DNA of 64,000 nucleotides, from NCBI GenBank assembly GCA_950097015.1, contig CATNEN010000002.1, positions 2,976,001 through 3,040,000 of the forward strand. The letters are read 5' to 3'. Both the position numbers and the translations under genes were made by a program. Below, piece by piece: positions 4,431 to 64,000 of this stretch (position 1 is its first letter; each line of letters starts with the position of its first letter). Source of the DNA: Macrostomum hystrix. Taxonomy: Eukaryota > Animalia > Platyhelminthes. Below the pieces are notes generated by a model that saw only the letters and a program-made list of their open reading frames with translations, was not told where the DNA came from and did not search any database.

Positions 4431-5980
4431 TTGAGGACAATCCAAACGGCACAAACCCCTCCGTCTTGTCCACACCTCACAATAGAACTGTTACAGGCGC
4501 ATCAACTTCCGTCACTTTTGGAGACTTACCGTCATACAGAGATAGTACATTACAAGATCAGCAACAAGAGTCTGTCGGTGGTGACGACGACATATCTGAA
4601 GAATCAGAGACTTCAGACCAGACGACAGTTAAAATACTTTTCTGTACAAAACAACACGCTCTATTACGATGATGACAATGGAAACATGCGACTCGTTATA
4701 CCACACTGTTATCGAGATGCCTTGTTATCCTCGTGTCATACTTCGGCTTTTGGCGGCCATTTAGGTCTTCAAAAGACTCTGCAGAGACTGACACGCTTCT
4801 ACTACTGGCCCACTCTCTACAAAGACGTACAAACTTTCGTTAATGGGTGTACAATATGTCACCGCGCCAAATCTGGCCCACGACTGCACCCAGAAAGAAA
4901 AGCCGTCAAGTTCAATGAAGTCTTCTCACACCTGGCTATCGACATAGTTGGACCTGTACCTCCTGCAAGCCGTGATAGAGACATTTTCAAGTACATCCTG
5001 ACCGCTCAGTGTGGCGTCAGCAAGTTTCTCTTCACGATCCCACTATGCGATACTACGACAGCTACAATCTGCTCCAATCTATTTCGATATGTGTTTTCCG
5101 TTGCCGGACTACCAGCCCATATCATCTCAGACAATGGTCCGCAGTTCATATCACAAGATTATCGCGACTTCATGAACACGCTAGGCATACAACTCATCTA
5201 CACCTCATACTATCAGCCATCTAGCAACTTGTTGAAAGAGCACACAAAACGCTCAAACAAACACTGACAGCATTTGTGCACGACAAACCCGAACTCTGGC
5301 TTGAATACCTTCCATCAGTTACGTTGGCATTAAATACGGCCGTACATGCTCATATGGGTGAATCTCCCTTCTATCTATTCTATGCTCGCGATTTCCTGCC
5401 ACCTAATGCTAGAATCATAGAGCATCAAACTACGGCCTACATAGATGTGATCAAGCCCGTCAACATTACGAGTTCTGCCATTTTACTCGCACGTGATATC
5501 GCCATTCAACATCTACACTCAGCAGCTGATGCTCGTACTACACGACATAATGAGCAAATGTCTCAATCCACTCCGTTAAAAGTCGGCGCTCGCTGCTATC
5601 TAGATGTTTCCGCCACTAAGGCAACTAAATTCTCTAATCCCTACCGTGGTCCTATGAGAATACTCAAATGGCTATCACCGCAGAATGTGCTCATCAATGA
5701 TGTGAACAAGCCTCATGAACAACCTATCGTGGTACATGCTTCAAAACTCAAACCTTCGCCGAACGATACGCCTCCTGAAGCCATGATACCTGAGTTCACA
5801 CATTCAACGGCTCAAACACACACTAATCATCGAGCGAATCTTACTCGCTCAATTGCGTTGCAAACATCTCAGACGGACATCAAGCAGTCGGAGAAGGGTG
5901 CAGACCGTAATGCAACACCTACAAACAACTTGAAAGAAGAGCCTAGATACCAACTACGCTCAAGAGCCGTACCACGATGA
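4431..5980 (+). pseudogene. Retroviral-type integrase, frameshifted at about 5230
   Basis: H2C2 zinc finger (CHTSAFGGHLG...CTIC), core AIDIVGP, IISDNGPQF and, after a 1-nt shift, VERAHKTLK. C-terminal PYRGPMRI and terminal PRYQLRSR. Confidence 0.9.
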
Positions 5981-6475: not shown

Positions 6476-6566
6476 TGTGACTAATCTGATGACCTGGCGA
6501 TTGACTAACCTGATGACCTGGCGATTGGCTAACCCGATGACCTGGCGATTGGCTAACCTGATGACC
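6476..6566 (+). repeat. 24-bp tandem repeat x~4 (CTAACCTGATGACCTGGCGATTGG) in LTR, also at 1-65
   Basis: Visible period of 24; some units carry an inverted CCAAT box (ATTGG). Confidence 0.85.
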
Positions 6567-8745: not shown

Positions 8746-9353
8746 TGACCGTTCCCGAAGAACTAATTTGTCCAATGCTTAGTCACGTCCCCCCTAGAAT
8801 AGAATACAGGTCTTTCAGATATTTAGAAACTTTCGCCTGATGTCTGATTTCTGATTTTAAATCAGGACGATTCCAGTTTGTAATTAAATTACACGCGCTG
8901 GAAACATTGTACTTCTACAGCATTCCGAGACGGATAGGTACGCGTTACATACTTCAGCGAATAATTTCACTTACTTGACAAATCTGTTAGTTGAACACAT
9001 GCACTACAGGAGCAACTCCACGAGCATTAGAAGCGACCGCACCACACGAGAAGCTATCGAGCCAGCACCTGAATTGGGACCCGCGTCAGCACATGGAATA
9101 ATGGGAAAACTAGGTAGCACTTGATCCTCTTGCCTTCTGTGAGCAGAGTTGTCAATTGTGGTAGGATTGCCTGAACAGACATTATGCTCCTTAAGCTGTT
9201 TTCTGGTGTACAGCATCACCTTCATCAGCTGTAGTCAGATCATCAAGGGCGTCTTGAACTGCCTTGTTGCAACGCCGGCGAGCCACAATCTCGCCATCTG
9301 TCCTCGAAAAGATTCTGCATGAATGCAACTCCCATCATGTTTCTTCTACAGCA

Positions 9354-10075
9354 TTAATCCAGAGTAAAGTAAAAGTTATCGTTATTCTGTGGCCTTCCAA
9401 AACTTAATCTCACACAAAGAACGTGGCTTTTTAGAAAACTCAGTTTGGAATAAAGGTTCAAGAGCAACAAGTCGATTAGAAATTGCTGAAGCTGTTCTAC
9501 TTGAAGTCTATAAATAAAGCAGCCACATTTATCACATGAAGAATAGCCACTATGACTTTTCATACCTTTAATAAATGCCCGAGCAGGTGCATCGCAAACA
9601 AGCTCGATACGAACTGTATTTTTAATCATTTTGAGCTCAGAAGTCAGTTGAGCTAAGAACTCTGCCAATGGTGGCTTGCCTTCGCCAAAAATATTCCAAT
9701 GACAGAAGGACTGCTATCATTGATAGCCCCAAGGATAGGACGAGATTTTTTTTGCTAATAAATTTTAACTTTTTTAATTTTAGTTTAATTTTTTAAGATT
9801 TTAATCTAAGATTTATATCTAAGATCTAACTTTTATAAATTGGTAAACCATCTATATTCATTTGTAATTCAGGCTTAACATTCAAATCTTAAGTCTCAAT
9901 TAAAAGTCTAGCTTTTCCTAGACCAAAGAAGGCAAATTTTTTTTTCCCATTGGAATAACAGCATTAGACCTTGGAGTTTCCATAAATCTTCGAGCAGACA
10001 TTGGAAGCTTAGGAACTCCAGGTAAAGTAGCTAGAATTTCTAAAAATCAATCAAGAGCAAAATGGGAAATTCCAA
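9354..10075 (-). pseudogene. Decayed CMC/CACTA-EnSpm-type transposase
   Basis: Broken frames read ...LPMSARRFMETPR..., QMNIDGLPIYKS, PILGAINDSSPSVIGIFFGEGKP, and LVCDAPARAFIKGMKSHSGYSSCDKC. Confidence 0.8.
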
Positions 10076-10634
10076 ATTCATTGACGCTGGAAAAAAGGAG
10101 CGTCACAGTGCATGCTTCAGAGCCCGGGCGCGAACAAAGGCCGCACCGCCGGCAGTGTCCGGGGCGCCTGGAATTGACACCTTAGGATAGGACGGCCGTG
10201 CCTATGCTTCAGAAAAAGGCCGGCCGCCCTCCTATCTCGGCAGTGTCGGCAGGGTTCTGCTAACCCATACTACTACTACGGGGTTTCAAGTTCGGCAGCA
10301 GCCTCTTTAGTTCCTCAAATAGGCGGTCATATGTTCGACGGTTTTTATTTGGCAGCAAGGCAAAAACAAGTGGAAGCACTTTTCCTAGAACCTTTCCATG
10401 AATTGAGTACACCTGAGTAAAAGGTTCAGGTAAAACATTCTATTGAAATCTAAGAATATAATCCGCAGAATTCCCCGGCAAAGAAAACGGAGTGACTTAC
10501 TCAAAGCTTCCTTTATCGGAATCCTCCCCATTCTGCTGAAACTTGTGAAAAAGAAAAAGAGGTTGAATAGGGGAAGAAAAAGTATTTAAGAAAGGCAGCA
10601 CAGTCGAATTCTGCTGGTTTTAAGGCACTCGCGC

Positions 10635-11477
10635 TTGAGCGTGAACTACATAGACATTCAAGGCTTCCCGTGTGATGGAGAGAATGATGACTTCATCGTG
10701 AAGGAGCTGGCAGTCCTCGAAGTAAAAAAGGGAAGCCACCACATTTCCCACCATGTGTACGCCCCACCGCATCCGTGGGAGAGAGTGTCACCCGACATGC
10801 GAATGTACTACAGTCAGCTCACGAAGAATCAGCATAAATTCAAGTGGAGCGATGGAAGCCGGCCGTATTTTCAATTGACCCATGCCATTGTGAGCATTGG
10901 AGGCGGAGTCACTTGGACAAGCGGAGAGGAAAAATCTATTTTTCTGACTGAGCTGCTAGGCAGACAGGTATTCAACCTAGACGATCTGGGCTCACCTTCC
11001 GCGAAGGAGTCAGCTAGCGGCTGTGCTGTGAGAAATGCATTGCTGTACTACAGTTGGCTAAAGCCAAAGTTCTGCATCAGCTTAAGAAGCGAGCAGTGTC
11101 CATGGCACAAGAGTTTCAGCGACATCAGCAGTCAAAGCATTCAAAATGAGTGCAGGAGCCACAACACTGAGTGTCACCAACCTGGTTGGCGGAGTGGATC
11201 TGAAACTGGTTGGAGGCAGGGGCGCCCAGCTGCCTCTAAGAGAACTGGCTCTCAGCATGGCGCATGTGATCTACCGACCCGTTTGGCCCCGGGTGCTCAT
11301 CAAGCAGATGCGAAATTCCAGGGTAACTCTGCTGCTCTACCCCACTGGGCAACTGAGCATCTGTGGCGCCAAGAGCTACGCAGACGCGGCCAGGGCTGCC
11401 CGTCGCTTCGTGGCTATGCTGCATCGCAGAGTGCCGGTTCAACTGCTGCCTCCTCAATCCATTTGTGTTCGAATTAA
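10635..11477 (+). CDS. DEDD-exonuclease-like protein of the type seen in Polinton/Maverick and viral elements (conserved part about 10635-11070; starts at TTG)
   Basis: Motifs YIDIQGF...FIVKELAV, YAPPHPW, HKFKWSDG, GEEK, VFNLDDLGSP, CAVRNA..YSW. Family assignment is from memory of such motifs, not a search. Confidence 0.6.
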   Translation: MSVNYIDIQGFPCDGENDDFIVKELAVLEVKKGSHHISHHVYAPPHPWERVSPDMRMYYSQLTKNQHKFKWSDGSRPYFQLTHAIVSIGGGVTWTSGEEKSIFLTELLGRQVFNLDDLGSPSAKESASGCAVRNALLYYSWLKPKFCISLRSEQCPWHKSFSDISSQSIQNECRSHNTECHQPGWRSGSETGWRQGRPAASKRTGSQHGACDLPTRLAPGAHQADAKFQGNSAALPHWATEHLWRQELRRRGQGCPSLRGYAASQSAGSTAASSIHLCSN

Positions 11478-11709
11478 AACTATTAGTGCAAAGGGCAACC
11501 TGGACTTATACGGTGCTTTATCGCTGTCTGATTTGCGCAAAATTCTATCCAGCGCAACTTATGAACCTGAATCGTTTTCTGCTTTAATCTGTAAACTTCC
11601 CTTTTGCAAATTTTTGCTTTTCCATAACGGCTCATTTGTTCTGAGCGGAGCTCGCTCTCTGCGACAATTGCGTTCTGATGCTGAGCATCTAGCAGCTCTC
11701 ATCAAGTGA
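11146..11709 (+). CDS. Divergent intronless TATA-binding-protein-like gene (187 aa, core fold only)
   Basis: Two TBP half-repeats: VTNLVG...YRP...TLLLYPTGQLSICGAKS..DAARAARRF and ATYEPESFSALI...FLLFHNGSFVLSGARS. aaaATG start; AATAAA at 11721-11726. Confidence 0.85.
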   Translation: MSAGATTLSVTNLVGGVDLKLVGGRGAQLPLRELALSMAHVIYRPVWPRVLIKQMRNSRVTLLLYPTGQLSICGAKSYADAARAARRFVAMLHRRVPVQLLPPQSICVRIKTISAKGNLDLYGALSLSDLRKILSSATYEPESFSALICKLPFCKFLLFHNGSFVLSGARSLRQLRSDAEHLAALIK

Positions 11710-13364
11710 CTTGAATAATCAATAAATGTATGTGAAAGGCTGAGCACTGGATCCGCTTTGAATTCAATGTAATTTTTGGAAGAATAGAAGCCAAATAAAA
11801 ATTTCGCAAAGGCTTCTTCTTTTAATGCAAGCAAAGAGTTCGGTAAGTTCATGCATATGTAGCAGACCTCTCAGCTCTCTCTATTTGTTGGATTTGGGAT
11901 TGGTGAGCTGAGTATTTTGGGGGGATGGTAGCGTAAGTTATGAGGGTGAGAATAGGTATTTTCCACGCTTTTCGGGTTACACCTAAGGTAGCGCTAATGC
12001 CCGAGCGGCAAGACACTAGCTACTAACAATGGGAGAGGAATCGACTGTTGCTGGCACGATGGCTTAGGTCACTAATCTGGGGCACACAGTCCGTGGGGCG
12101 TATCAGGATGGATTGAAGTTGCCTGGTGAACGTCCTTCGCACTCTCACTTACTTTCCTCTATGGGGTCCGGGATTAGTACAGTCTCATGAGGGATAAAGG
12201 CGGAGTTTTGGGACTTCAGGGGGGTATTTAGATAACTTTAGGTGGACTTCAGATAGACTTCAGGTGGACTTTTAGACGGGATTTTAGGACGATATTTTGG
12301 GATTTCAAAGGGATCATATAATAGGGTGGATTTGGGTAAAGAAGGCCGACGAGAGATCTTTGGGAGAGGATTGGAAAGGCAAAGGTATCTTAACTGTTTT
12401 CCTCTTATTAGGAAAATAACTAAGGAACTCGATCTATTTAATAGCGAAACAGGGAAAGAGTTAGGAAGTGTAATCACTTATATTTTCGTAGAGCAAAACG
12501 TCAAGAACGTATAGCAGGTTAAACAGGGGTAACAGGGTAAACAGAGTTAACCATTGTTAACGGTGTGGTTGGGGATCGAGGTGAAGATCGCATTATATTT
12601 TTCTCTGTGTATATATATACCAAAATTGGGGTGGGTGCATGTTCCGCTTGAGTGCGCATACAACGAACAAAGAGCACCGCGTTAGGTTACGACAAATAGC
12701 TAGCGCGTGAGAAAAAGTGGCGTGAGTTCAAAATGGAAGTGTCCTAATTACTCACTGCCTCACATATGTTGTAGTGCTTCTTCTATTTGTACTTCATTAG
12801 TAATTCAAATCCTCCTCTTTAGTAATACATAATGTAAATGGTTAGCCTAACCTCCTTATTTATTGTCTTTAGTCACTTATAGTGACCTATACAGTCATTA
12901 TACCGCACTCCTTGTTGGTTGGATTGATTCAAACTACTGATAGCTTGGGTAGCGTGGCTTTCAACACGATAGATCTGGCCTTCTGCCAGTAATGTTCTAG
13001 ATACTAAATCTAGGTAATTCTGGAGACACTGCTCTCAGGTGTTTCAGGCAATTCAGTCAGATATTTCGGGCTCTCTGGCCAGTCTGTACTCGGGCTTTCC
13101 CCGGATCGGATTGTTCACGGCTTCCACTTACTTTAGAAATAAGTAAGGCGTGTAAGATTGCTCACGAGGAGATTTGAACTGTCTCTTATAAAAGGCTTGA
13201 AACGGTTAACTGTTCCTAGTGAATTCGGTCTATATTTATAGTAGCATTTCCTACTACGCTGGGTATATACTCAGTATATTTACGCAAGTTAAACAAATCT
13301 AAATAGGTCAAATATTATTGATATAAGCGTAGCATATTTTTAGCGCGGATTTAAACTAGCCTGT

Positions 13365-14902
13365 TGTAATGAAAGGTGAAATGGCAGGCCGCGATTTGAA
13401 CGATAATCAACTAGAGTGCTGAATCAGCGCACGAACCCTTACGACTCACTGATCGATTTATTATATATTAAAGTATTCTTCATTATAACAAACAGTATTA
13501 ATAAAGGTACACATATTGGTAAACAATAAATAATAAGTGCATAGTGAATGCACAGTAATATGCATATAGTCTGAATACATGTAATAGCCAAAAACAAATA
13601 CAACTGAAATACAAAAGTGCGCCTATATTTGAAATAGATAGGCAAATACATTATATTGCCCTCCTCATAGAAAAGACAATGTCCACATTGTTAATAATAG
13701 TACAAAAGAATGTCTAAAAAATACCTATGATATATACAGTACATTAAATTATAAGAATAAATATTACATTCCCAACTTGACATTAACATGTAGGGTTACA
13801 AGAACACAAAAATTGTCTGGTCCCTAATGAAAAGCAAGTTACAAGCACAGTGCATGAGAGACAATGCAGAAAGTATTGCTCAGATACTCAGATACAACCA
13901 GAACCAACAGGGCTAAACAGAGCCCTCAGTTCTCCCCACCACAACCAGCACAGAGCACAAAGCATAGCATGAAGCAAGCAAAAACACTTTATATAGAAAG
14001 TAATTGCCTGAAGATACTGCCGTGATACACTGCCATTGGGTGATACTTTACAATCAACACGAAATACAGTACAAAATTGACAAAGTTATATTGAAAAGTA
14101 AGTGAGCGTGGAGATTTCCACATTAATACAGTATAAAATACCTAAGAAAGATTACTGTATTAAAAATACTAAGTGAGATGCAAGACATTAAAACCAAAAC
14201 AAATTATAAATGAATAGGACGCAGTTTCAATATATTTGAAGACATTTGACAGACATTTTAAAAACAGCAAAAATAATAGTGAAATCAAATCTCATTGTGG
14301 CTTGACACATTAGATTTTGAATGCAAAGGGCTTACCCGAAACTAAAATAAATATATATTATTACAATGCAACATAAATAAAATCACTAAAGATGGACAAA
14401 AAAACAACAATAAGCAGTAATATTACTCTGCCTTTAAAACTTCCTGTGCAATTCCGACACTGCCCGTGGCGTCCCTGCCGCGATTGGCTGGCTTCATGGC
14501 ATTAGCCAGATACCTGCAGGCTCGCGCTGATTGGCTGGCTGCATGCTGAAGGAGTCAGAAGGATCCAGCGGAGTCCACTCATGGAATCCAGGTCCTGGCG
14601 TGGTCGCCAATTGTAATGAAAGGTGAAATGGCAGGCCGCGATTTGAACGATAATCAACTAGAGTGCTGAATCAGCGCACGAACCCTTACGACTCACTGAT
14701 CGATTAATTATATATTAAAGTATTCTTCATTATAACAAACAGTATTAATAAAGGTACACATATTGGTAAACAATAAATAATAAGTGCATAGTGAATGCAC
14801 AGTAATATGCATATAGTCTGAATACATGTAATAGCCAAAAACAAATACAACTGAAATACAAAAGTGCGCCTATATTTGAAATAGATAGGCAAATACATTA
14901 TA
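13365..14902 (-). mobile_element. Small non-coding LTR element (TRIM-like), 291-bp LTRs
   Basis: LTRs 14612-14902 and 13365-13655 (1 mismatch seen), ending ATTACA on -. 18-nt PBS TGGCGACCACGCCAGGAC at 14592-14609 (tRNA-Arg(TCG)-like). PPT GAGGAGGGCAA at 13656-13666. No TSD found. Confidence 0.85.
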
Positions 14903-17900
14903 CTACTACACATACATTCCACTAACACACAGAAAATACGAGCGTACTCCATCCATCGCTCGTCGCATAAAAGACAAAAAAAATATCGTGAAAACTATGA
15001 AAAATAGAAAAATCAATTCCCGTCACCTCATCAATTGACTTTGAAAAATTTTAATTGCAGCGGAATTCTTACATAAATAAAAAGGACAAAATACAAGAAG
15101 ACCAAATACAATACTTAGAACGAACTTAAATGAACACCCAAATTCAGACATCAGATCCAATTTCCAATGGACTGCTTAGAGTTTTGCACATGAAAGGAAA
15201 AAGAATAATCATTCATGCAGTCTGAGGTAACTTGGCTGAGGTGCCGAGAGGAGACTACTCGACTTCGGCTACTGCTGCTTCTGTTGCTGGCTTTTCTTCT
15301 TCACCTCAAGCTGCTCTCTTTGCAACTGCCTTTTAGCAGCCCGAATAATCCTCCACCTGTTGGCCTCCTGCTTCTTTTTATCGGAGCTCACGATGGTGTG
15401 GCCGCGGTGGTAGCTTGGAACTCTACCACTTGCAATTCTCTCCACGTTGCTGCACTCGTCTCGTGCTAGCCAGCAGGAAGCGCGGCACAGGGTTCTCATG
15501 GTGCCGAGGTGGAATGCCTCCGAGCTGGCAGACTTCGCAGGTCAAACAAATTTCAAAGAGCCCATTATCGCAGCTCGAAAATAATTTTTTTGTTGTCATG
15601 GTAGCGAGTTAAAATGTAAATGCTGAACTATGCTTAGTTGTCTTAAGCAAGAAACGGATTGTGTGGATAGAATGTATGCAAATATTTTTATTTCGACTCC
15701 TTAATATACTCGATTCAAACTCCCCGCGGCCGCCATTTATGGCTACTTTAATGAATTATTGCTGCAGTGCAGGCATTGCTTGCATACCTATTGCGAGCCA
15801 ACTTAACAACAACAACAGTGCCTGCGCACCAGTGCGCCAGCACAGCTATCAACCCCACAACAATCCAGAGCCCTACTCGATCTCGAACCCCAAATTATCA
15901 GACTGGCCTCAATAAAGCGATTGGGAGGGTCACCTGCTAATTAGCCAGGGCTGGCGGACCAATCGCAAACAGGTAAACAGGTAGACACTAGAGAGACCTC
16001 CTCCCCAAGGCCATTTTTAAACCCTCCAGTGGCTACCGTCATGGATACCGCCATGGTTGACTTCATCCCATCCCATCAGTAAGTTCCCATGCCTCCTATC
16101 TCCCCAGTGTCGGCAGAATTCTGTTAGGCAGGCATCCCATCACAGAATCCCTTCAGTCGCCAGCAACAGGCAGCAACCCCACCCCATGCCTCCCCACCCT
16201 CCACACTCTGGATTGGCCGCCACACTCCACCCCAATGCTTTCCTCCTTTCTCCTTCCTCCACTGCACTGGGATAGGCGGCACCTCTACACTCCAAAATAC
16301 ACTGCCGGGATAGCCTCCTATCTCGACGATATAATAATGTCTTGTATCAAATCGTTGAGAGACGATTGCTCAGATTATAAGTAAGGTGACCGTGTGAGCA
16401 CGAAAGTCGAACAATCACTGACCTCGATTTTCCGTCCCGCTTTATATACCCACATTTTCAGTGGTTGTAATATAATATATCGTTTACTACCATATTTTAT
16501 TTTCTCCGTCCCGCAACACCATAATAGATAAAAATGCATCATGCCGATGGTTGTAAACAAGTAAACCTTGCACCCAACTGACCCGTTAGTTTCCAAAACA
16601 AGCCATAGATCAAAGCTTATCCGCCGCTCCAGCATAAGCATAAAGTTACTTGAGCTGTGTTTATAAACAACTTTTATCATTTCACTTTAATGCGCTTTTT
16701 TTTATTTTTTTTGTACAATATTTTAGTTGCTATCTACAGATTTTATTAGCTATCTTGTTTTTATAGATAGCGTCCTTTTCAGTAGCCGTGCGGCGAACTC
16801 GACGCGGAGTGGGGTGCTCTCAAGTAGACAAAGAGATTGGCCAGCATCTCCTCTCATCTCTGCTGCGCTAGCTGTACCCAGTGTAAAGTGCCAGTGACCC
16901 ATAAGTTTGGTATCTTAGCCCAGGAGCCAGCAAAGAAACTATACTAAACTGGGTGATATCTCAACTATAGAAGTCACAACGTATACAAGTTGCTTTGCGC
17001 GTATGAAGCGATTGTGGATGATGGGGCTCGAGGGCTCAGTCCTCAGGGGCACCCCACGGACCCGGGCTTGCGTACTGACCCTGGCTACGGTCGTTCCTAC
17101 CGACCCGCTTACGACACAGAGTCGGCTGGACTAGGCAGATCGAGCGTGCGACGCACGACAGCCTCCAGCGAGCGTACGACGCACACTGGTGGAGGTGGGG
17201 ATCAGCGTACGACGCTCCACTTCCTCTAGGGTGCCTAAAGCTAGCCCGCAAAGGACAAACACGGAGTCGAAGGCTTACCTGTACACAATATATACTGCAA
17301 CCAGCAGTTCACAACAGTCGCGCGGCGCAGGCAGGGCCGGATGACCAGAGGTCAAACCCGTGTATTGTTAATCAGTCGAGTATCGTAAATCGGACAGAGC
17401 AGCGTTCCCGTAGAGGGGGGCCCAGGCAGTCGTTGTTTTTAGGCGGCGTATGTAGTTGTCTTGAGGGGGGCCGGCGGTGGCAGAGGCCGAGGTCCAGCGC
17501 TCCACAATAAATAGCACCCCTGGGAAAGACCAGGGCTAAAGCCCCACCCCCTAGGGGCCAGGGCAGACCCAAGACCCCAAAACACGGCCCCGCCAATCAG
17601 CGCAGCGCACGCATAAATCACTAGGGGTACAGCAACCGGTGTAAGCCGGCTGAGTGACAAATAACAGGGGGGAGAGGTGCAGGGTCAAAATGGCCCAGCC
17701 AATCAGCGCGGCGCAGGCCGAGATAAAATACAACCGCTGGGGGGGGTTCACTCACGCACTATAGGTGCATTGGGCACCTTAATTAAGCCCAGTCACCTCA
17801 CGATAAAAAAAATTTAACACACTCACTGTACATGTCATCATGCAATTTGTGTCTGCACAGTTTATTGGACAGCATTAGTGCTCTACAAATCGAATAATTG

Positions 17901-18211: not shown

Positions 18212-18612
18212 TATCCTACATGTTCTGTAGCTGTATTCTATCCTACATGTTCTGTAGCTGTATTCTATCCTACATGTTCTGTAGCTGTATTCTATCCTAC
18301 ATGTTCTGTAGCTCTGTATTCTATCCTACATGTTCTGTAGCTCTGTATTCTATCCTACATGTTCTGTAGCTCTGTATTCTATCCTACATGTTCTGTAGCT
18401 GTATTCTATCCTACATGTTCTGTAGCTGTATTCTATCCTACATGTTCTGTAGCTGTATTCTATCCTACATGTTCTGTAGCTCTGTATTCTATCCTACATG
18501 TTCTGTAGCTCTGTATTCTATCCTACATGTTCTGTAGCTCTGTATTCTATCCTACATGTTCTGTAGCTGTATTCTATCCTACATGTTCTGTAGCTGTATT
18601 CTATCCTACATT
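18212..18612. repeat. 27/29-bp minisatellite TATCCTACATGTTCTGTAGC(TC)TGTATTC x~14
   Basis: Directly visible. Confidence 0.95.
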
Positions 18613-19855: not shown

Positions 19856-22800
19856 CTACATCAGGTTGTCATTTTTCTCCTCCTTAGTTCCGATCCTGGC
19901 AATCTCAGTGGTGCAGCGAATCACAATAACCCTGCTTCCGGTGGCTGCGTCAACCGCGTACAAATGCGTGGCTCGCTTAGCGCTGCGACTGCTGGCGCAG
20001 GCCATTGGGCCGGGCACGAAAAGCCCCTGATTGGTCGCGGAGCTGGAGTTTTCGCTGTAGATTTCGCCCACATTCATCTGCGTGTCCTCCAGCCAGTTTT
20101 GCGCCCAGCCGGTGTTGGTGAGATCCGGCTCAAAGTCTGGGTGCCACACCGCGTAGATTGTCGGCCCGCCTGTAGCCGCGAACACCATCTGATGAGCCGA
20201 GTCGCATGCCATGCCGAGCAGACTCACCGGAGTCTCGGAGTCCAACAGCTGCGAGTAGCTGTGACTGCTGCGGTTCAGAGAGATGAGTCTTGAGTCATCT
20301 GTGCTGGTACATTATGCACAGTGCTGGTAGGTTGTGTGCAGTGCTTGTAGATTGTGTGCAGTGCTAGTAGATTGTGTGCAGTGCTAGTAGAGTGTGTTTG
20401 CAGTGCTGGTAGATTGTGTGCAGTGCTGGTAGAGTGTGTTTGCAGTGCTGGTAGATTGTGTGCAGTGCTGGTAGAGTGTGTTTGCTGTGCTGGTAGAGTG
20501 TGTTTGCTGTGCTGGTAGAGTGTGTTTGCTGTGCTGGTAGATTTTGTGCAGTGCTGGTAGAGTGTGTTTGCAGTGCTGGTAGATTGTGTACAGTGCTGGT
20601 AGAGTGTGTTTGCTGTGCTGGTAGAGTGTGTTTGCTGTGCTGGTAGAGTGTGTTTGCAGTGCTTGTAGATTTTGTGCAGTGCTGGTAGAGTGTGTTTGCA
20701 GTGCTGGTAGATTGTGTGCAGTGCTGGTAGATTGTCTGCAGTGCTGGTAGATTGTGTGCAGTGCTGGTAGATTGTGTGCAGTGCTGATAGAGTGTGTTTG
20801 CAGTGCTGGTAGAGTGTGTTTGCAGTGCTGGTAGATTGTGTACAGTGCTGGTAGAGTGTGTTTGCAGTGCTGGTAGATTGTGTGCAGTGCTGGTAGATTG
20901 TGTGCAGTGCTGGTAGATTGTGTGCAGTGCTTGTAGATTGTGTTCAGTGCTTGTAGATTTTGTGCAGTGCTGGTAGAGTGTGTTTGCAGTGCTGGTAAAG
21001 TGTGTTTGCAGTGCTGGTAGATTGTGTGCAGTGCTGGTAGATTGTATGCAGTGCTTGTAGATTGTGTTCAGTGCTTGTAGATTTTGTGCTGGTAGATTGT
21101 GTGCAGTGCTTGTAGATTGTGTACAGTGCTTGTAGATTTTGTGCAGTGCTGGTAGAGTGTGTTTGCAGTGCTGGTAGATTGTGTGCAGTGCTGGTAGATT
21201 GTGTGCAGTGCTGATAGAGTGTGTTTGCAGTGCTGGTAGAGTGTGTTTGCAGTGCTGGTAGATTGTGTACAGTGCTGGTAGAGTGTGTTTGCAGTGCTGG
21301 TAGATTGTGTACAGTGCTGGTAGAGTGTGTTTGCAGTGCTGGTAGATTGTGTACAGTGCTTGTAGATTTTGTAACACTGGCACTGATAGGATAGGTCACG
21401 TTCTGATTTGGTAAATCACCTGAGGCAGATCTGCCTATTAATAGCGGCCTGCTGTTGCGCAACGTCTGGCGAGACGAACGTCCTCGCTCCGATGGTGCGC
21501 CACACGAGCTGGTCCCTTTTCTCGAAGCACTTCGAGCGGTAGCGGAGCTTTCGGGCGGTTGATTAATTAGCAGCATCACAGGTGTGCATTGAGTACACAC
21601 TGCCTGACCCATTCAGTACACACTGCCTGACCCATTCGGTACACACTGCCTGACCCATTCAGTACACACTGCCTGACCCATTCAGTACGCACTGCCTGAC
21701 CCATTCAGTACACACTGCCTGACCCATTCAGTACACACTGCCTGACCCATTCGGTACTCAATCCCTACCATAATGTCACCAGCTGAGTTCATCAGGTAGA
21801 TAAACTGCCTACTCAGGCAAACGTTGAGCAGTTCCTCAGTGAGTGAGTAGCAGCGGTCCACCACACTCGTGTCGCTCAGGTCGGACAGGTAGGCTTTATG
21901 GAGTCTGTCGGGATACAGAAGCACGGCGGAGTTATTTTGCTCATCAGCGGCCATGCAGCGAACATCGCCAGCGCGCACGGCCTGGTGCAAATATTCCACT
22001 TGACCCATTGATGGTGGGCGGCTGTAGGCTGTGAGGAGGCTGCTGTTGGCGCGATGCTGCCAATGCTTTTGTCTGCTGTTCAGTGTTCAAGTTTTAACGA
22101 TGTTCTTAACAATGTCCTGCCAGGGAGCTTGTTGGCCAGTGGTTAAAGCATGCGGCTTGCGACCGAGAGGCAAGGCAGGGATTCGAGTCTCAGCTAAAGA
22201 TAGCATCGTATCCTTACAATAATTAAAACACTAGATTCGGGATTGCTTCAGTTCATATAGCTGTTAAATAGGCAGCCTTATCAGCTGGAGTATTACAATA
22301 CAACTATTCTTAAGTATCAAGTATTATATTACGTACGTTTAAATAATATATATTTTTTATTTCTTATTTTTTATTTACATATAGGGTTGCAGAAGGGGGT
22401 CAGTGGCAGAGCGGTCTAACGCGTTTGCCTCTCGCACCAAGGTCCTAAGTTCGATTCCACGGCGAGGCCACATTTATTTGGGGCGCGGCCGCGGAGAGAA
22501 GGCTTTGGGGGCTTGTCGTGCAATTTACGCCATTGAGGGCCAACCTCCAAGGCACAGTGACAGTGTGCAATGCCTGGCGATGAAAAAGTCAGGGCAGATG
22601 TACACACCTGTGTGAGTTTTCTATATCTGCTATCTTCAGTAAAACGACTTCCCTGAAGGTCAGAAACTTCAAGGGTGTTAGGTCGCTAATGATTCTTTGT
22701 ATTAATCATGTTAAAGTGTGTCACACTCACATTTGCTTCGGCTGTTTCTTTTGCTGGTGCATCAGCAATGACCGAGATGCGTTAGCATGCTGCCTAAACA

Positions 22801-25939: not shown

Positions 25940-28900
25940 ATGGCCAATTTATTGTGGCAATATGAAGATGGACCTAATGTCTGGAAGAACTACTCGTCAG
26001 AGCACATGACAGCTCTAAATGCAGCTATTGCTGCTGATAGTAGTGCAGTGAGTGTATTTGCATTGTCAGTTGCCAGCTACATGTTTTCTAACATTAGAAA
26101 GTATACAAGCAAGATTTTCATTTTTAGTATATTAGATTTAAAATGACTTTATTATCACTTCAGTGCAACCTCAAGCTGCCAAACAGTTTCGAAGTGACTG
26201 TGGACTTTGACAAGGGCATTCAAAGTCGAAAAGGTGCTTCAGCATCAGCTTCGAGGAAGATGCGAGTTGTGTTTGTTCTAAAGCCTGTAGATGCTAAAGG
26301 TTCAGGCAAGTAAACTTTTATATAAACGTGGGCACATGCATCATTTATCACTAGCTGATGAGTAATGTATTATAACTGTAATGGGGCGCCACACCCTCCC
26401 TTAATTACCGCAGCTAATGCAATGTTAAAAGGACAGCTAAAGCATGTCCAAGACAAAAGTTTCAGTTTTTTTAAACGTAAAAAAAATAATTTTTAAACAC
26501 AGTTCTTATATGCTACTAGCATGAGTAGTGTGTATTGTATAATCGCTCTTTAAAACAATTCTTGATCGTCCACCGCTCAGAGTTGGCCGCATTGTGGCAG
26601 GCCGACCTGAAGCCGTGGGCCAACATGCCGCCAGGTCCAGCCTGCAAGCTCGAGGCGGCGCACAATCGCGGCGACTCGACGATCTCCGTCAGCATCGGCG
26701 GCAACGCCTACACTGTTGATCTGCGACGCCTCACCCAGACCAACGATAAGACCGGCTTTAGGCGCAACATCCGGCGAAGAGTTCTTCCTGAACGGGACTG
26801 GAAAGCTGCTGCTGCTGCTGCTGGTACGCTTTTAGATTGCACTTTTGCCTTTTATTCACTTCCACTGAGCCAGAGCATCCTATCAGCCTGTCACCCACAT
26901 CCTATCAGCCTGTCACTCACATCCTATCAGTCTGTCACTCACATCCTATCAGTCTGTCACTCACATCCTATCAGTCTGTCACTCACATCCTATCAGCCTG
27001 TCACTCACATCCTATCAGCCTGTCACCCACATCCTATCAGTCTGTCACTCACATCCTATCAGCCTGTCACTCACATCCTATCAGCCTGTCACTCACATCC
27101 TATCAGCCTGTCACCCACATCCTATCAGCCTGTCACTCACATCCTATCAGTCTGTCACTCACATCCTATCAGTCTGTCACTCACATCCTATCAGCCTGTC
27201 ACTCACATCCTATCAGCCTGTCACTCACATCCTATCAGCCTGTCACCCACATCCTATCAGTCTGTCACTCACATCCTATCAGTCTGTCACTCACATCCTA
27301 TCAGTCTGTCACTCACATCCTATCAGTCTGTCACTCACATCCTATCAGCCTGTCACCCACATCCTATCAGCCTGTCACTCACATCCTATCAGTCTGTCAC
27401 TCACATCCTATCAGTCTGTCACTCACATCCTATCAGTCTGTCACTCACATCCTATCAGTCTGTCACTCACATCCTATCAGTCTGTCACCCACATCCTATC
27501 AGCCTGTCACTCGCATCCTATCAGCCTGTCACCCACATCCTATCAGCCTGTCACTCGCATCCTATCAGCCTGTCACTCACATCCTATCAGTCTGTCACCC
27601 ACATCCTATCAGTCTGTCACCCACATCCTATCAGTCTGTCACTCACATCCTATCAGTCTGTCACTCACATCCTATCAGTCTGTCACTCACATCCTATCAG
27701 CCTGTCACCCACATCCTATCAGCCTGTCACTCGCATCCTATCAGCCTGTCACCCACATCCTATCAGCCTGTCACTCGCATCCTATCAGCCTGTCACTCAC
27801 ATCCTATCAGTCTGTCACTCACATCCTATCAGTCTGTCACCCACATCCTATCAGTCTGTCACCCACATCCTATCAGTCTGTCACCCACATCCTATCAGCC
27901 TGTCACCCACATCCTGTCAGTCTGTCACTCACATCCTATCAGTCTGTCTCCCGCCCTGTGAATCGCAGCGGTCCCGGACCCACGGCCGGCTGTCACTCGT
28001 CGGACCAGCGGTCGCCTAGCAGCTGCTGGGCGCAAGCGGCCGGCCGCGTCGCCGTCTCCGCCGCCCTCATCGGCGAATGGCGACGAAAGCGAAGACAAAG
28101 TCGCCGACGCTGAGCAAGACAAGAAGAGCAGCGGAAACAAAAAGCAGCCAGCTAAAAAGCAGAAGAAAGGCAGCACTGAAGCCGCCACTGCCAGTGACCA
28201 AGACAATCTCGATGAAGAAAAACCTGACGAGAAGGTGGTGATTGTGCGGGGCGCTGCCGCAGTTGATACCGAACTAACTGGCTTATCTGCTGCTTCAGTT
28301 CGAGTCTACACTGACGGTGGCGCAGTCTACGATGCCATGCTAAACCAGACTAACCTGCAGTTTAATAACAACAAGTTCTACCTGCTGCAACTGCTGCAGA
28401 AGCCGCCGCATCACTATTGGGTTTGGTTCCGTTGGGGCCGAGTTGGCAAGGCTGGCCAGCGCAGTCTGGTGCCCTGCGGACACGACCTAGATAGGGCCAA
28501 GGCTCTGTTCTGCAAGAAGTTTGAAGATAAGACTAAGAATGAATGGGCCTCTGTGGCCGCTAAAACCTTCAGGAAGGTGAGCTGAATATTTTTGTCAGTG
28601 TCATCTTAGATCTCTCATCCCCCTCGTTTCTTATCTCTTCTGTGCCGACTCTCTTACGTTTGTTATCTCTCTCCTGTTTTATCACTACTTCGTGTCTCAT
28701 TGTGTCTCATCTCATGTCTCATCTCTCTCGTATCTCATGTCTCATCTCTCTCGTATCTCATGTCTCATCTCACTCGTATCTCATGTCTCATCTCTCTCGT
28801 ATCTCATGTCTCATCTCTCTCGTATCTCATGTCTCATTTCTCTCGTATCTCATGTCTCATTTCTCTCGTATCTCATGTCTCATTTCTCTCGTATCTCATG

Positions 28901-61078: not shown

Positions 61079-64000
61079 TTACTTGTACCGCTTACGCTTG
61101 TCACGGGCAGCTCTAGGATGGCGTCTCAGTGCCACGGCATCATTTTCCTGACCAGTATCCTGGCCGACAGGCGGAGGCGGGCCGGCAGGCGAAGGCGGGC
61201 CGGCAGGCGGGCCGGCAGGCGGGCCGGCAGGCGGGCCGGCAGGCGGGCTGGCAGGCGGGCCGGCAGGCGGGCCGGCAGGCGGGCCGGCAGGTGGAAACAT
61301 TGGTCGGAGCTGAGTCACGTGTCACATGCAGGACTGTTGGCCTCGTCGTAGGATGCAGGTGTCGCCTCGAACCTCTTCTACCGTCCACGGCTGGGTCTCG
61401 AATGGCAGCTGAGTTTTGATGCGTGCCTGCTGCTTTCGGAGAACCATTGTGCCGGGAACTACTCTGTGCTCCTTGGCGGTGTTGCGCTTGTCAAAGGCTC
61501 GCTTCATTTCGCGCGTGTACTGCCGACTCCAGTCCCTCACGGCTTGATGGTCGAATCCAGTCACAGTTGGCTGCCGACTAGCCGGGATTCCGTCGTTGAT
61601 CGCCCTGCCCATGAGTAGCTCGGCCGGGGTGCGTCCTGTGGCTCTGTGTGGCGTGGTGCGGAATGCCAGTAGCCAGTCGTCTAGAGCCTCTCTCCAGTTC
61701 CGGCCCTCAGCAATCGCCGTCTTGATCACCTTGCCAATGCTGCGGTTGACACGTTCGGTGGCTCCGTTGGACTCCGGGTGCAGTGGACAGATAAGCCGGT
61801 GATGAACTCCATATGCGGTGAGGAAGTTACGAAATTCAGCGGAGTTGAAGGGCGGTCCGTTGTCGGTAATGACCTCCGCGGGGATTCCGTGGCGACTGAA
61901 GAGCCGTCTCAGGTGCGGTGTCACGCTGCCGGCCGTGGTTGACTGCATTACGTCGACTTCTAGGTACTTGGAGTACAAGTCGGTGGTGACGAGCAGCATG
62001 TGACCTTGCACCGGACCGTAGAAGTCCATGCCGAGCAGCTGCCAAGGCCCGTCGGGCATTTCCGTCGGCTTTAGAGGCGTCTGGTGCACGTGCGTTGCTG
62101 CTGCCTGACAGTAGATGCAGCACTTGACAAAGACTTCGCAGTCGCTGTACATTTTTGGCCACCAGACCTTGGTTTGCAGGCGCTTTAGAGTCCTGTCCGC
62201 CCCGAGGTGTCCGGTGTGAGCCAGCTGCAGGATCGGCCTCCGCAGTGCCTCGGGGATGACGATGAGATCTCCACGAAGCAGGACGCCGTCGTTCTCGGTT
62301 AGTTCGCTGCTGATGGACTTGAATGAGCGTTGCACCGGGCTGAGAGTGTTCCAGTTGCCGGTTCTGATCGCGCCGAGTGCGGCCTGCATTTCCGCATCAG
62401 TTCTTGCAGCCTCTCTGATCTGTTGGATTGTGAAGCCCTTTGGCACGGCACCAGTTGACACAGCGTTGACGTGGGCTTCATCGAGGACCTCGCCGATGTT
62501 TGGCCTCGACTCTGGCAGCGGCTGGCGGCTGAGCAGATCGGCTGGATTTGCTGGTCCCGGCCTGTACAACAGAGTAAAGCGGAGGTGCTGGATGCGGAGG
62601 GCCATTCGCTCGATCCGCGGCGGCGGGCGGGACCCCGGCTTGAACAGTGGAACTAGGGGCCGGTGGTCCGTCACAACGGTGAAGTTCGGGTCGCCTGCCA
62701 GGTAATGTTCGAATTTCAGGCAGGCGAACTTGATGGCCAGCGCCTCCCGCTCGATCTGCGCATACCGCTGCTCCACCGGCGACAGAGCTCTGCTGGCATA
62801 GGCCACGGGACGGCTGCTGCCGTCTGGCTGCTTCTGGGTGAGAATGGCGCCGAGTCCGATCGGAGATGCGTCCACCAGGAGCTCCGTGTGCCGCTTGCGA
62901 TCGAAGAATGCTAGCGTGTCGGCGTTGGCAATCGCACTTTTGATGCTGTTGAATGCCTTGGTGTGGCTGGCGGTCCAATCCCACGGCTGGCCCTTTTTAG
63001 TCAGTTGGCGCAGCGGGGCTGACACGTCAGCGTATCCAGAAATGAACTTCGCCAGAAAGTTTGCTGTGCCAAGGAATGACCGTATTTCTGAGACATTGGC
63101 GGGCTGCCGGAAGTCCTGCATTGCTTGGATCTTCTCGGCAGCTGGTTGGATGCCCTTGGCTGACAGATGCATTCCGAGGAAGTCGACTGCTGGCTTGGCG
63201 AACTTGCACTTGTCTTTGTTCAACGTGATGCCAAACTCGCGGAGGCGTTGAAGACATACATTCAGTCTTTCATGATGTTGTTTGATATCTGCGGCGTACA
63301 CGATGACATCGTCGTGGACCCACCTGACGCCGTCGATGCCGCTGAGGATGCCTAGCATAACCCGTTGAAGGATTTCTGAGGCGTTGGTAAATCCCATGCT
63401 CAGCGGCTTCAGTCGCATCAGTCCGAGCGGCGTGCTGAATGTGAACAGATATCGGCTGTCTTCGTGCACGGGGATCTGATAGAAAGCTTTCCGGATGTCA
63501 AGCTCGCTGAAAAGCTTGGCTCCAGACATCTCCTCGGTGACTTCGTCCAGTGTCGGGATCTGCTGCTTTTCCGGAACAACGAAGGCGTTCAGGTCGCGAA
63601 GGTCTTGGCAGAGCCTGACGCCGCCGTCCGCCTTGGGCACTACGACCATGCGTGCCACCCAGGCGCTGGGTCCCTTGACTGCTTCGATGATATCCTGTCG
63701 CTCCAATTCCTTCAGCTCGTCCACCACGGTTGCTCTTAGATGCGCCGCTACCCGGGAAGGCGCGTGGCAGACTGGAACGGCGTCGCCTGACAGCTGCACT
63801 TTCACCTGGACGCCCTTGATGCATCCGATGCCTTCGAAGACTTCTCTGTGACGGTGCAGGATGTCTTGCAGCTGCGGTGACAGGCTCGCTGTGCTGTTTG
63901 AGTGCACGGCTTCCGTCCCGCTCGAATCGGGGCGCTGGATTTTGAGCACTCCGAGTCTGAATGCGGGCTCGCGACCGAGAATCGTCAGGCCGTCACCATC
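61079..64000 (-). CDS. Gypsy pol (protease end, RT, RNase H, integrase) with one in-frame TGA at 61322-61324
   Basis: Open to window edge (ILGREPAFRLG). RT LDIRKAFYQI, VHDDVIVY; RH DAS..GLGA, YAQIEREAL, TDHRPL; INT HTGH..CIYC, MDFYGP, TDNGPPF, GATERVN. Tail has (PPAG)n from a 12-bp repeat. Confidence 0.95.

Follow-up and report, generated by a model that had tools for sequence, protein, structure and literature searches.

Virus-encoded proteins resembling the TATA-binding protein (TBP) are known from large DNA viruses, whose TBP-carrying members reach genome sizes of at least 100 kb and for the most part bring their own transcription machinery. Mavericks/Polintons and adintoviruses are thought to be reliant on host transcription. 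Here we describe two overlapping open reading frames (ORFs), ORF1 and a TBP gene (ORF2), in a 64,000-nucleotide stretch of the genome of the flatworm Macrostomum hystrix (GenBank assembly GCA_950097015.1, contig CATNEN010000002.1, positions 2,976,001 to 3,040,000 of the forward strand). We refer to this whole stretch as the window. The region is probably what remains, after decay, of a Maverick/Polinton-type, adintovirus-like element from a Macrostomum-like flatworm, and fuller relatives of it carry the ORF1/TBP pair beside a protein-primed DNA polymerase of family B (pPolB).

The closest described systems are the Mavericks/Polintons and the adintoviruses (Starrett et al. 2021, PMC8502044). 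Like these, the relatives of the window locus have nearly overlapping arrays of intronless ORFs, a PolB that matches PF03175, an adenain-like protease, and a P-loop ATPase encoded next to the protease. Adintoviruses carry "Oncoid" genes with paired cysteine motifs upstream of PolB (PMC8502044), the position at which the relatives have a Cys-rich gene. A protein of Drosophila-associated adintovirus 2 resembles ORF1 in structure. Unlike the published adintovirus account, in which no such gene is described for animal elements, the Macrostomum element has a TBP gene that appears to be overprinted by ORF1. In that paper "TBP" is named nowhere but in one figure legend that goes with MELD virus maps, and apart from this entry our literature search found no paper linking Macrostomum with Mavericks/Polintons or animal Mavericks with TBP. 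The original prediction, which was made from the DNA letters alone, had proposed that the locus is an undescribed system. This stands in so far as our literature search met no TBP described for an animal element, and it is qualified by the listing of TBP in the MELD legend. What is newly seen is a Maverick/adintovirus-like element with an ORF1/TBP accessory pair; a TBP next to pPolB is rare and barely described for such elements.

Identity of the two genes

The two genes lie on the same strand, with ORF2 in the +1 frame relative to ORF1, and neither needs an intron. Their features, in window positions, are as follows.

10635 to 11477, plus strand: ORF1, 280 codons, frame free of stops and frameshifts. 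The product has an N-terminal DnaQ/MAEL-like fold domain (about residues 1 to 145), a Cys/His-rich stretch, and a tail of about 110 residues in an alternative frame of TBP repeat 1.
11146 to 11709, plus strand: ORF2 (TBP), 187 codons, ATG start, intact frame, stop codon TGA at 11707 to 11709.
11146 to 11477, plus strand: overlap of ORF1 and ORF2, 332 nt, spanning TBP repeat 1 and stopping in the linker between the repeats.
11721 to 11726, plus strand: AATAAA poly(A) signal, beginning 12 nt past the ORF2 stop.

Both the intronless, overlapping, same-strand layout and the AATAAA 12 nt past the TBP-like stop had been predicted, and the coordinates bear them out. A poly(A)-type signal follows the TBP stop by 1 to 12 nt in five of six lineages. 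The start of ORF1 at 10635 is a TTG assigned by a bacterial-code ORF caller; the full-length frame is without a canonical initiation codon, which we count as one initiation defect.

ORF2 encodes a divergent TBP. It matches PF00352 with an E value of 4.7e-22 (78.1 bits, cut-off 22.9) in two stretches that correspond to the two tandem TBP repeats, and it is a core-only protein of 187 amino acids (aa). In the NCBIfam scan its matches are archaeal TBP models, the best of them at E 8e-16. Both repeats align with solved TBPs, with E values from 7e-13 (archaeal) to about 1e-8 (eukaryotic). The description of the protein as TBP-like, core-only and remote from canonical TBP was therefore correct. A profile built from five element TBPs scores 72 to 77 bits on all but one of the five solved archaeal TBPs, with 54 bits on the remaining one, as against about 47 to 52 bits on eukaryotic TBP cores. 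Close similarity to the eukaryotic TBP/TRF group is thus lacking, and ORF2 is no recent copy of the host TBP, because the profile scores archaeal TBPs above eukaryotic ones. A close host paralogue, which the original prediction had named as the finding that would speak against it, does not appear at these scores.

Four phenylalanines of TBP, two per repeat, are the DNA-kinking positions. HMMER pairs the Phe residues of 1ais with W48 and Y65 of ORF2 repeat 1 and with F144 and F159 of its repeat 2. Each of these residues is aromatic, and none varies among the five element TBP sequences. In a structure model of low confidence (predicted local distance difference test, pLDDT, 59) the order strand-helix-four-strand-helix occurs twice. 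ORF2 thus resembles canonical eukaryotic and archaeal TBPs in its two tandem repeats, the expected secondary-structure order and the four aromatic positions, and differs from them in having no N-terminal extension, in the W and Y of repeat 1, and in its low score, 43 to 52 bits, on eukaryotic cores. The best viral structural matches of the model in BFVD (E 5e-7 to 1e-3, template modelling score (TM) 0.26 to 0.39) are indicative only, as the model is of low confidence; they are named for phycodnaviruses, mimivirids, ascoviruses, the asfarvirus B263R type and a crustacean bacilliform virus. ORF2 is like the TBP-like proteins of large DNA viruses in its divergent, core-only TBP fold. Unlike the viruses that carry those proteins, the element is of Maverick type and presumably dependent on host polymerases.

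ORF1 has no match in Pfam, PHROGs, NCBIfam or the PDB sequences. A word-index search with ORF1 returned one relative only, and an exhaustive search returned 446 representative clusters with E values no higher than 1e-3, of which 13 reached 1e-10 or better. The members are mostly 130 to 250 aa long, are similar over a core of about 125 residues and, where their source names were looked up, are "hypothetical protein" or unnamed throughout. We built an AlphaFold model of ORF1 from a 70-sequence family alignment (pLDDT 84.7) and searched with it using Foldseek. In the PDB it most closely resembles DnaQ, RNase T, PolC-exonuclease and MAEL domains (E 3.6e-4 to 1e-3, TM about 0.45 to 0.56). The best BFVD matches are stronger (E 1.3e-11 to 1e-9, TM 0.60 to 0.73) and comprise an unnamed entry, a protein from Drosophila-associated adintovirus 2 and ORFs of banchine ichnoviruses. 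The TBP's neighbour therefore has viral homologues, in the adintovirus protein and the ichnovirus ORFs, where the original prediction had taken their absence as a sign against a viral module.

The likeness of ORF1 to the MAEL domain (E 8e-4) is one of fold only. The Maelstrom (MAEL) Pfam model finds no match in ORF1 at E up to 1, nor in the 70 family members at E up to 0.01. ORF1 shares with DnaQ/DEDDh exonucleases and MAEL its N-terminal fold and an acidic residue on the first strand, D7, which is kept in 64 of 70 members. Unlike DEDDh exonucleases, which have D-x-E as their first motif, the family has no sequence-model match and mostly shows D-x-Q (52 of 70 members), with E at the third position in 15 of 70. 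The residues invariant in the family (K23, E24, W71), together with the nearly invariant H67 and C130, also differ from the DEDDh set; D7 is likewise nearly invariant. The earlier label "DEDD-like" therefore holds at fold level, through the DnaQ, RNase T and MAEL matches; at sequence level the scans are without any match, and the catalytic-residue set is not shown. Profile searches had been proposed for both genes, and they gave the two-repeat PF00352 match for ORF2 and empty family-model scans for ORF1, for which the exhaustive search yielded the 446 unnamed clusters.

We calculated the ratio of nonsynonymous to synonymous differences (pN/pS) among copies. It is 0.40 to 0.52 for the N-terminal part of ORF1 and 0.15 to 0.27 for TBP. 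Judged from these ratios, both ORF1 and TBP evolved under purifying selection among copies.

Two members of the ORF1 family have further features. One carries a BIR/IAP domain (E 1.4e-18), in keeping with the report of anti-apoptotic accessory genes in adintoviruses (Starrett et al. 2021, PMC8502044). The other, P0010 (Joint Genome Institute (JGI) metagenome, 253 aa), has a Gly/Ser/Arg/Trp-rich tail like that of ORF1. From this likeness, the ORF1/TBP overlap may extend outside Macrostomum.

Gene order in the relatives

Relatives of the TBP turned up only in Macrostomum lignano and in Logan assemblies (runs SRR316283xx-4xx), with 69 to 75% aa identity in the word-index search. We compared two M. 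lignano loci, L001 (contig NIVC01002930) and L002 (NIVC01004894), and nine loci on Logan contigs (L003 to L011). The features of the M. lignano loci that were assigned coordinates are listed here.

L001 932 to 1276, plus strand: adenain-like protease (PF00770, E 9.7e-6, 25.8 bits, cut-off 21.3), a short ORF of 114 aa.
L001 4672 to 8355 and L002 2401 to 5859, minus strand: PolB with Endonuclease_7 (PF02945) immediately preceding the polymerase domain (E 7e-7 and 1e-5, respectively).
L001 9687 to 10907 and L002 7563 to 8981, minus strand: Cys-rich gene ("ORFX") upstream of PolB, with a Cys-rich N-terminus followed by low-complexity repeats.

The plus strand of L001 encodes, in order, a 232-aa ORF, the adenain-like protease, a P-loop ATPase, a 115-aa ORF, ORF0 (230 aa) and the ORF1/TBP region. 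Past TBP, on the minus strand, come a protein-primed PolB of 1227 aa and then the Cys-rich gene of 406 aa. L002, which is about 72% identical to L001 in nucleotides, has ORF0, ORF1, TBP, a convergent PolB and the Cys-rich gene. In both, the pPolB is directly beside ORF1/TBP and convergent with it (PF03175, E 7.6e-14 in L001 and 2.1e-12 in L002). The protease upstream of the pair was seen in L001, the sole M. lignano locus with upstream DNA examined. L003 and L006 encode an ATPase with Walker A and B motifs, a small ORF, ORF0, ORF1 and TBP, and neighbouring genes abut or overlap by a few bases. The ORF1/TBP arrangement recurs in L002, L003 to L005, L006 and L007, and L008 to L011.

These loci support the earlier proposal of an endogenous viral or Polinton-like module with its own TBP, for which a search for linked genes had been suggested as a check. 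The pPolB (PF03175) is found beside the pair in both L001 and L002, the adenain-like protease and P-loop ATPase are found in L001, and the window copy is a fragment of such an array. Assignment of the relatives to the Polinton class is supported by their PolB and protease sequences. ORF0, the small ORF, ORFX and the 232-aa ORF of L001 gave uninformative results in the Pfam, PHROG, NCBIfam and PDB-sequence scans. We considered naming the ATPase as A32/FtsK type and dropped this, as the scores are too weak (Pox_A32, E 0.095).

Several points weigh against the assignment to a TBP-encoding Maverick-type lineage. The ATPases encoded near the protease gene (217 to 219 aa, with Walker A and B) give generic P-loop matches only. 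No integrase, capsid gene or terminal repeat is seen in the relatives' DNA, which leaves out the left parts of the elements; the ORFs scanned right of TBP in L001 and L002 include no rve integrase. The structure model of the TBP is poor. Finally, the word-index searches with the single TBP and with the five-sequence profile returned the identical five proteins, and absence elsewhere is not established.

The TBP could instead belong to a host family, a Macrostomum-specific TBP-related factor whose proximity to transposons is coincidental in repeat-rich DNA. In the window the TBP ORF is intact and has a poly(A) signal while no other element gene is intact, and UniRef calls one fragment "TATA-box-binding protein". 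However, the order ORF0-ORF1-TBP with a convergent pPolB is found in two independent M. lignano contigs at about 72% nucleotide identity, and the upstream part of this order recurs in unrelated Logan contigs. The genes are also intronless and abut or overlap, and the TBP stands closer to most solved archaeal TBPs than to eukaryotic ones. We regard a host origin as highly improbable.

The copies differ in the integrity of ORF1. It is intact in L006 and L007, has one frameshift in L003 to L005, and has at least one stop in L002. In L001 the ORF1 and TBP frames run together through one frameshift-type difference, and the product is the annotated 359-aa protein P0006. This raises the alternative that ORF1 and TBP are one fusion gene, either with the window copy as a frameshifted pseudogene of a P0006-like gene or with programmed ribosomal frameshifting. 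P0006 is indeed an uninterrupted 359-codon ORF (L001 3032 to 4111), of which the first 219 residues match ORF1 and the last 138 match TBP. But the five other lineages have two frames, with a TBP that has its own start codon and a complete repeat 1, whereas P0006 reads the start of repeat 1 in the wrong frame and so is without part of the TBP fold. P0006 is the odd one out by a single frameshift-type change, and the old ORF1 frame of L001 is still open to the conserved stop. A single fused gene is very unlikely, and we rejected it, treating P0006 as the exception among six lineages.

The overlap and the predicted expression of the TBP

In the window, L002, L003, L006 and L008 the ORF1 frame is open across the first ~110 codons of TBP, and in L001 from the frame change onward. 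It ends at one common alignment column in the six lineages, in the linker between the TBP repeats. The other alternative frame has 5 to 10 stops in the overlap, and the ORF1 frame has 5 to 8 stops over the remaining ~77 TBP codons. Permutation of synonymous codons gives P values for the open ORF1 frame of 0.0006 to 0.019 over the whole gene and 0.0014 to 0.036 over the overlap only. Other element genes have a stop every 14 to 25 alternative-frame codons. Synonymous divergence in the TBP frame is 0.28 to 0.57 inside the overlap versus 0.61 to 0.86 outside it, and is lower inside in 10 of 10 pairs. The guanine-plus-cytosine (GC) content is 0.56 to 0.58 in the overlap versus 0.37 to 0.46 after it (0.58 versus 0.43 for the rest of ORF2 in the window copy). 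At the level of sequence, the identities of the genes, their linkage and the conserved overlap are established.

We lean towards the view that the ORF1 tail and TBP repeat 1 are dual-coded, that is, that one overprints the other. The pair is like overprinted viral genes in its long same-strand overlap, in the constrained TBP frame set against a fast, disordered ORF1 tail, and in the lowered synonymous change. It differs from established cases in that the ORF1 tail is a predicted product and the statistical support is moderate.

The overlap may alternatively be incidental. The function of ORF1 would then end with the folded domain, and the open tail of ~110 codons would be a by-product of the GC-rich TBP repeat 1 and codon choice. 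Several observations argue for this and so against dual coding. The tail is mildly basic and fast-evolving (pN/pS 1.3 to 2.1; 48 to 71% identity between copies), and it is of low complexity, with 55 to 59% S/G/A/P/Q/T, as expected of a hitch-hiking frame. Open runs of 86 to 95 codons arise by chance in the alternative frames of pPolB, and there are longer ones in the GC-rich ORFX. The permutation P values for L006 are just 0.019 to 0.036. The copies are related, so their open frames are non-independent. Higher GC, RNA structure or an internal promoter could be the cause of the lowered synonymous change. On the other hand, the frame is open in six lineages at 25 to 30% nucleotide divergence with a common end column, the synonymous divergence of the TBP frame is roughly halved in the overlap in every pair compared, and the GC content steps down at the overlap end. 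With these on the other side, we consider an incidental overlap rather unlikely, and dual coding is the reading that we carry forward.

Between the ORF1 start and the TBP start codon there are 10 to 16 ATGs, with no depletion. Leaky scanning to the TBP start was rejected on this count.

We propose the following arrangement for the element. In the fuller relatives a packed same-strand array of protease, P-loop ATPase, small ORF, ORF0, ORF1 and TBP faces a convergent pPolB unit. The array closes at the poly(A) signal just past TBP and would be transcribed as one unit or a few. TBP would need its own messenger RNA (mRNA), because scanning cannot reach its start past the 10 to 16 preceding ATGs; this mRNA could arise by internal transcription initiation or through a splice or trans-splice acceptor. 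The predicted product would bind DNA by the usual saddle, in which all four kinking aromatics (W, Y, F, F) are kept. It may seed initiation complexes at promoters of the element itself, or compete with the host TBP, and expression of the element could thereby be partly independent of host promoter recognition. ORF1 would be a putative nucleic-acid-handling protein, and overprinting may provide it with a C-terminal tail that is basic and disordered. We infer that the TBP would drive transcription of the element that carries it.

A different role is conceivable for the same element. The TBP may be a decoy or antagonist that sequesters TBP partners, occupies host promoters or, with the MAEL-like ORF1, blunts silencing. 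The strong divergence of the TBP would suit such a role, as would the W and Y that stand in repeat 1 for the two Phe, and the fold of ORF1 resembles the MAEL domain of Maelstrom, a factor of the PIWI-interacting RNA (piRNA) pathway. But retention of all four aromatic positions would fit real DNA binding, and ORF1 is without a sequence match to the Maelstrom Pfam model. A decoy function seems unlikely to us, and we prefer a TBP that serves the transcription of the element.

The fullest form of our proposal is offered tentatively. It holds that a lineage of animal Maverick/adintovirus-like elements encodes its own TBP, which is equally remote from eukaryotic and archaeal TBPs, with repeat 1 overprinted by a MAEL/DnaQ-fold protein, and that the pair may form a dedicated module for expression and counter-silencing. 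We consider this possible, though short of probable.

State of the window copy and significance of the element

The window copy is a decayed remnant. What is left is the TBP ORF, intact and followed by its poly(A) signal, an ORF1 that has one initiation defect, and one truncated gene. The parts that match the relatives are as follows.

10642 to 11657, plus strand: block of nucleotide homology to L001 and L002 (74 to 76% identity), ending at both limits of the gene pair.
15230 to 15595, minus strand: fragment of ORFX, the 5' part of the Cys-rich gene, in the same orientation as in the relatives and at a shorter distance from TBP.
10440 to 10514, plus strand: weak match, possibly due to chance, to the small ORF ahead of ORF0 in L001 (48% identity over 25 aa, E 0.007).

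Apart from this weak 25-aa match, tblastn, tblastx and sensitive blastn find no match in the window to PolB, protease, ATPase, small ORF or ORF0. The 3.5 kb between TBP and the ORFX fragment has no PolB match. There is no second ORF1/TBP copy in the window and no inverted repeat of at least 40 nt in its positions 9000 to 17000. Taken alone, the window copy does not qualify as a Maverick/Polinton, and at most its TBP ORF could still be expressed.

Within the 3.5 kb, where the relatives have pPolB, there is a direct repeat of 297 nt with 99% identity (13359 to 13655 and 14606 to 14902, spacing 1247 nt). The two copies may represent the termini of a nested insertion, or the repeat may have arisen by local duplication. 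Just upstream of ORF1 there are short minus-strand ORFs at 9354 to 9668 and 10260 to 10412, one of them Cys/His-rich and transposase-like by eye, with no Pfam match. These may mark an insertion that cut the left part of the element.

The original prediction had placed the pair among transposon debris, and two pieces of retroelements with long terminal repeats (LTRs) confirm this setting. The rve matches in the window belong to these LTR retroelements.

4431 to 5980, plus strand: LTR-retroelement pol piece with Integrase_H2C2 and rve.
61322 to 63949, minus strand: LTR-retroelement pol piece, an 875-codon ORF with RVT_1, RNase H, Integrase_H2C2 and rve.

An identical 24-nt tandem unit at 1 to 66 and 6478 to 6566 brackets the first of these pieces. 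Other tandem arrays are found at 18212 to 18611 (27 nt x 14), 20301 to 21372 (20/42 nt x 25-52) and 21587 to 21757 (23 nt x 7). A 494-codon ORF at 26535 to 28019 on the plus strand has a WWE domain (E 3.4e-11); it is possibly an exon of a host gene or another repeat.

The window copy itself is an ordinary decayed remnant, and the significance lies with the element from which it would derive. The ORF1 family of 446 unannotated clusters gains a first context. The conserved overlap of ~330 nt between TBP and a gene of DnaQ/MAEL fold is a candidate for overprinting in an element of an animal genome. If the proposed role of the TBP is true, a mid-sized integrating DNA element would have its own promoter recognition, which is so far known mainly from giant viruses. 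Some Mavericks would then bring their own promoter-recognition factor, a functional link to the large DNA viruses, and this would bear on the activation of such elements, or their escape from silencing, in animal germlines.

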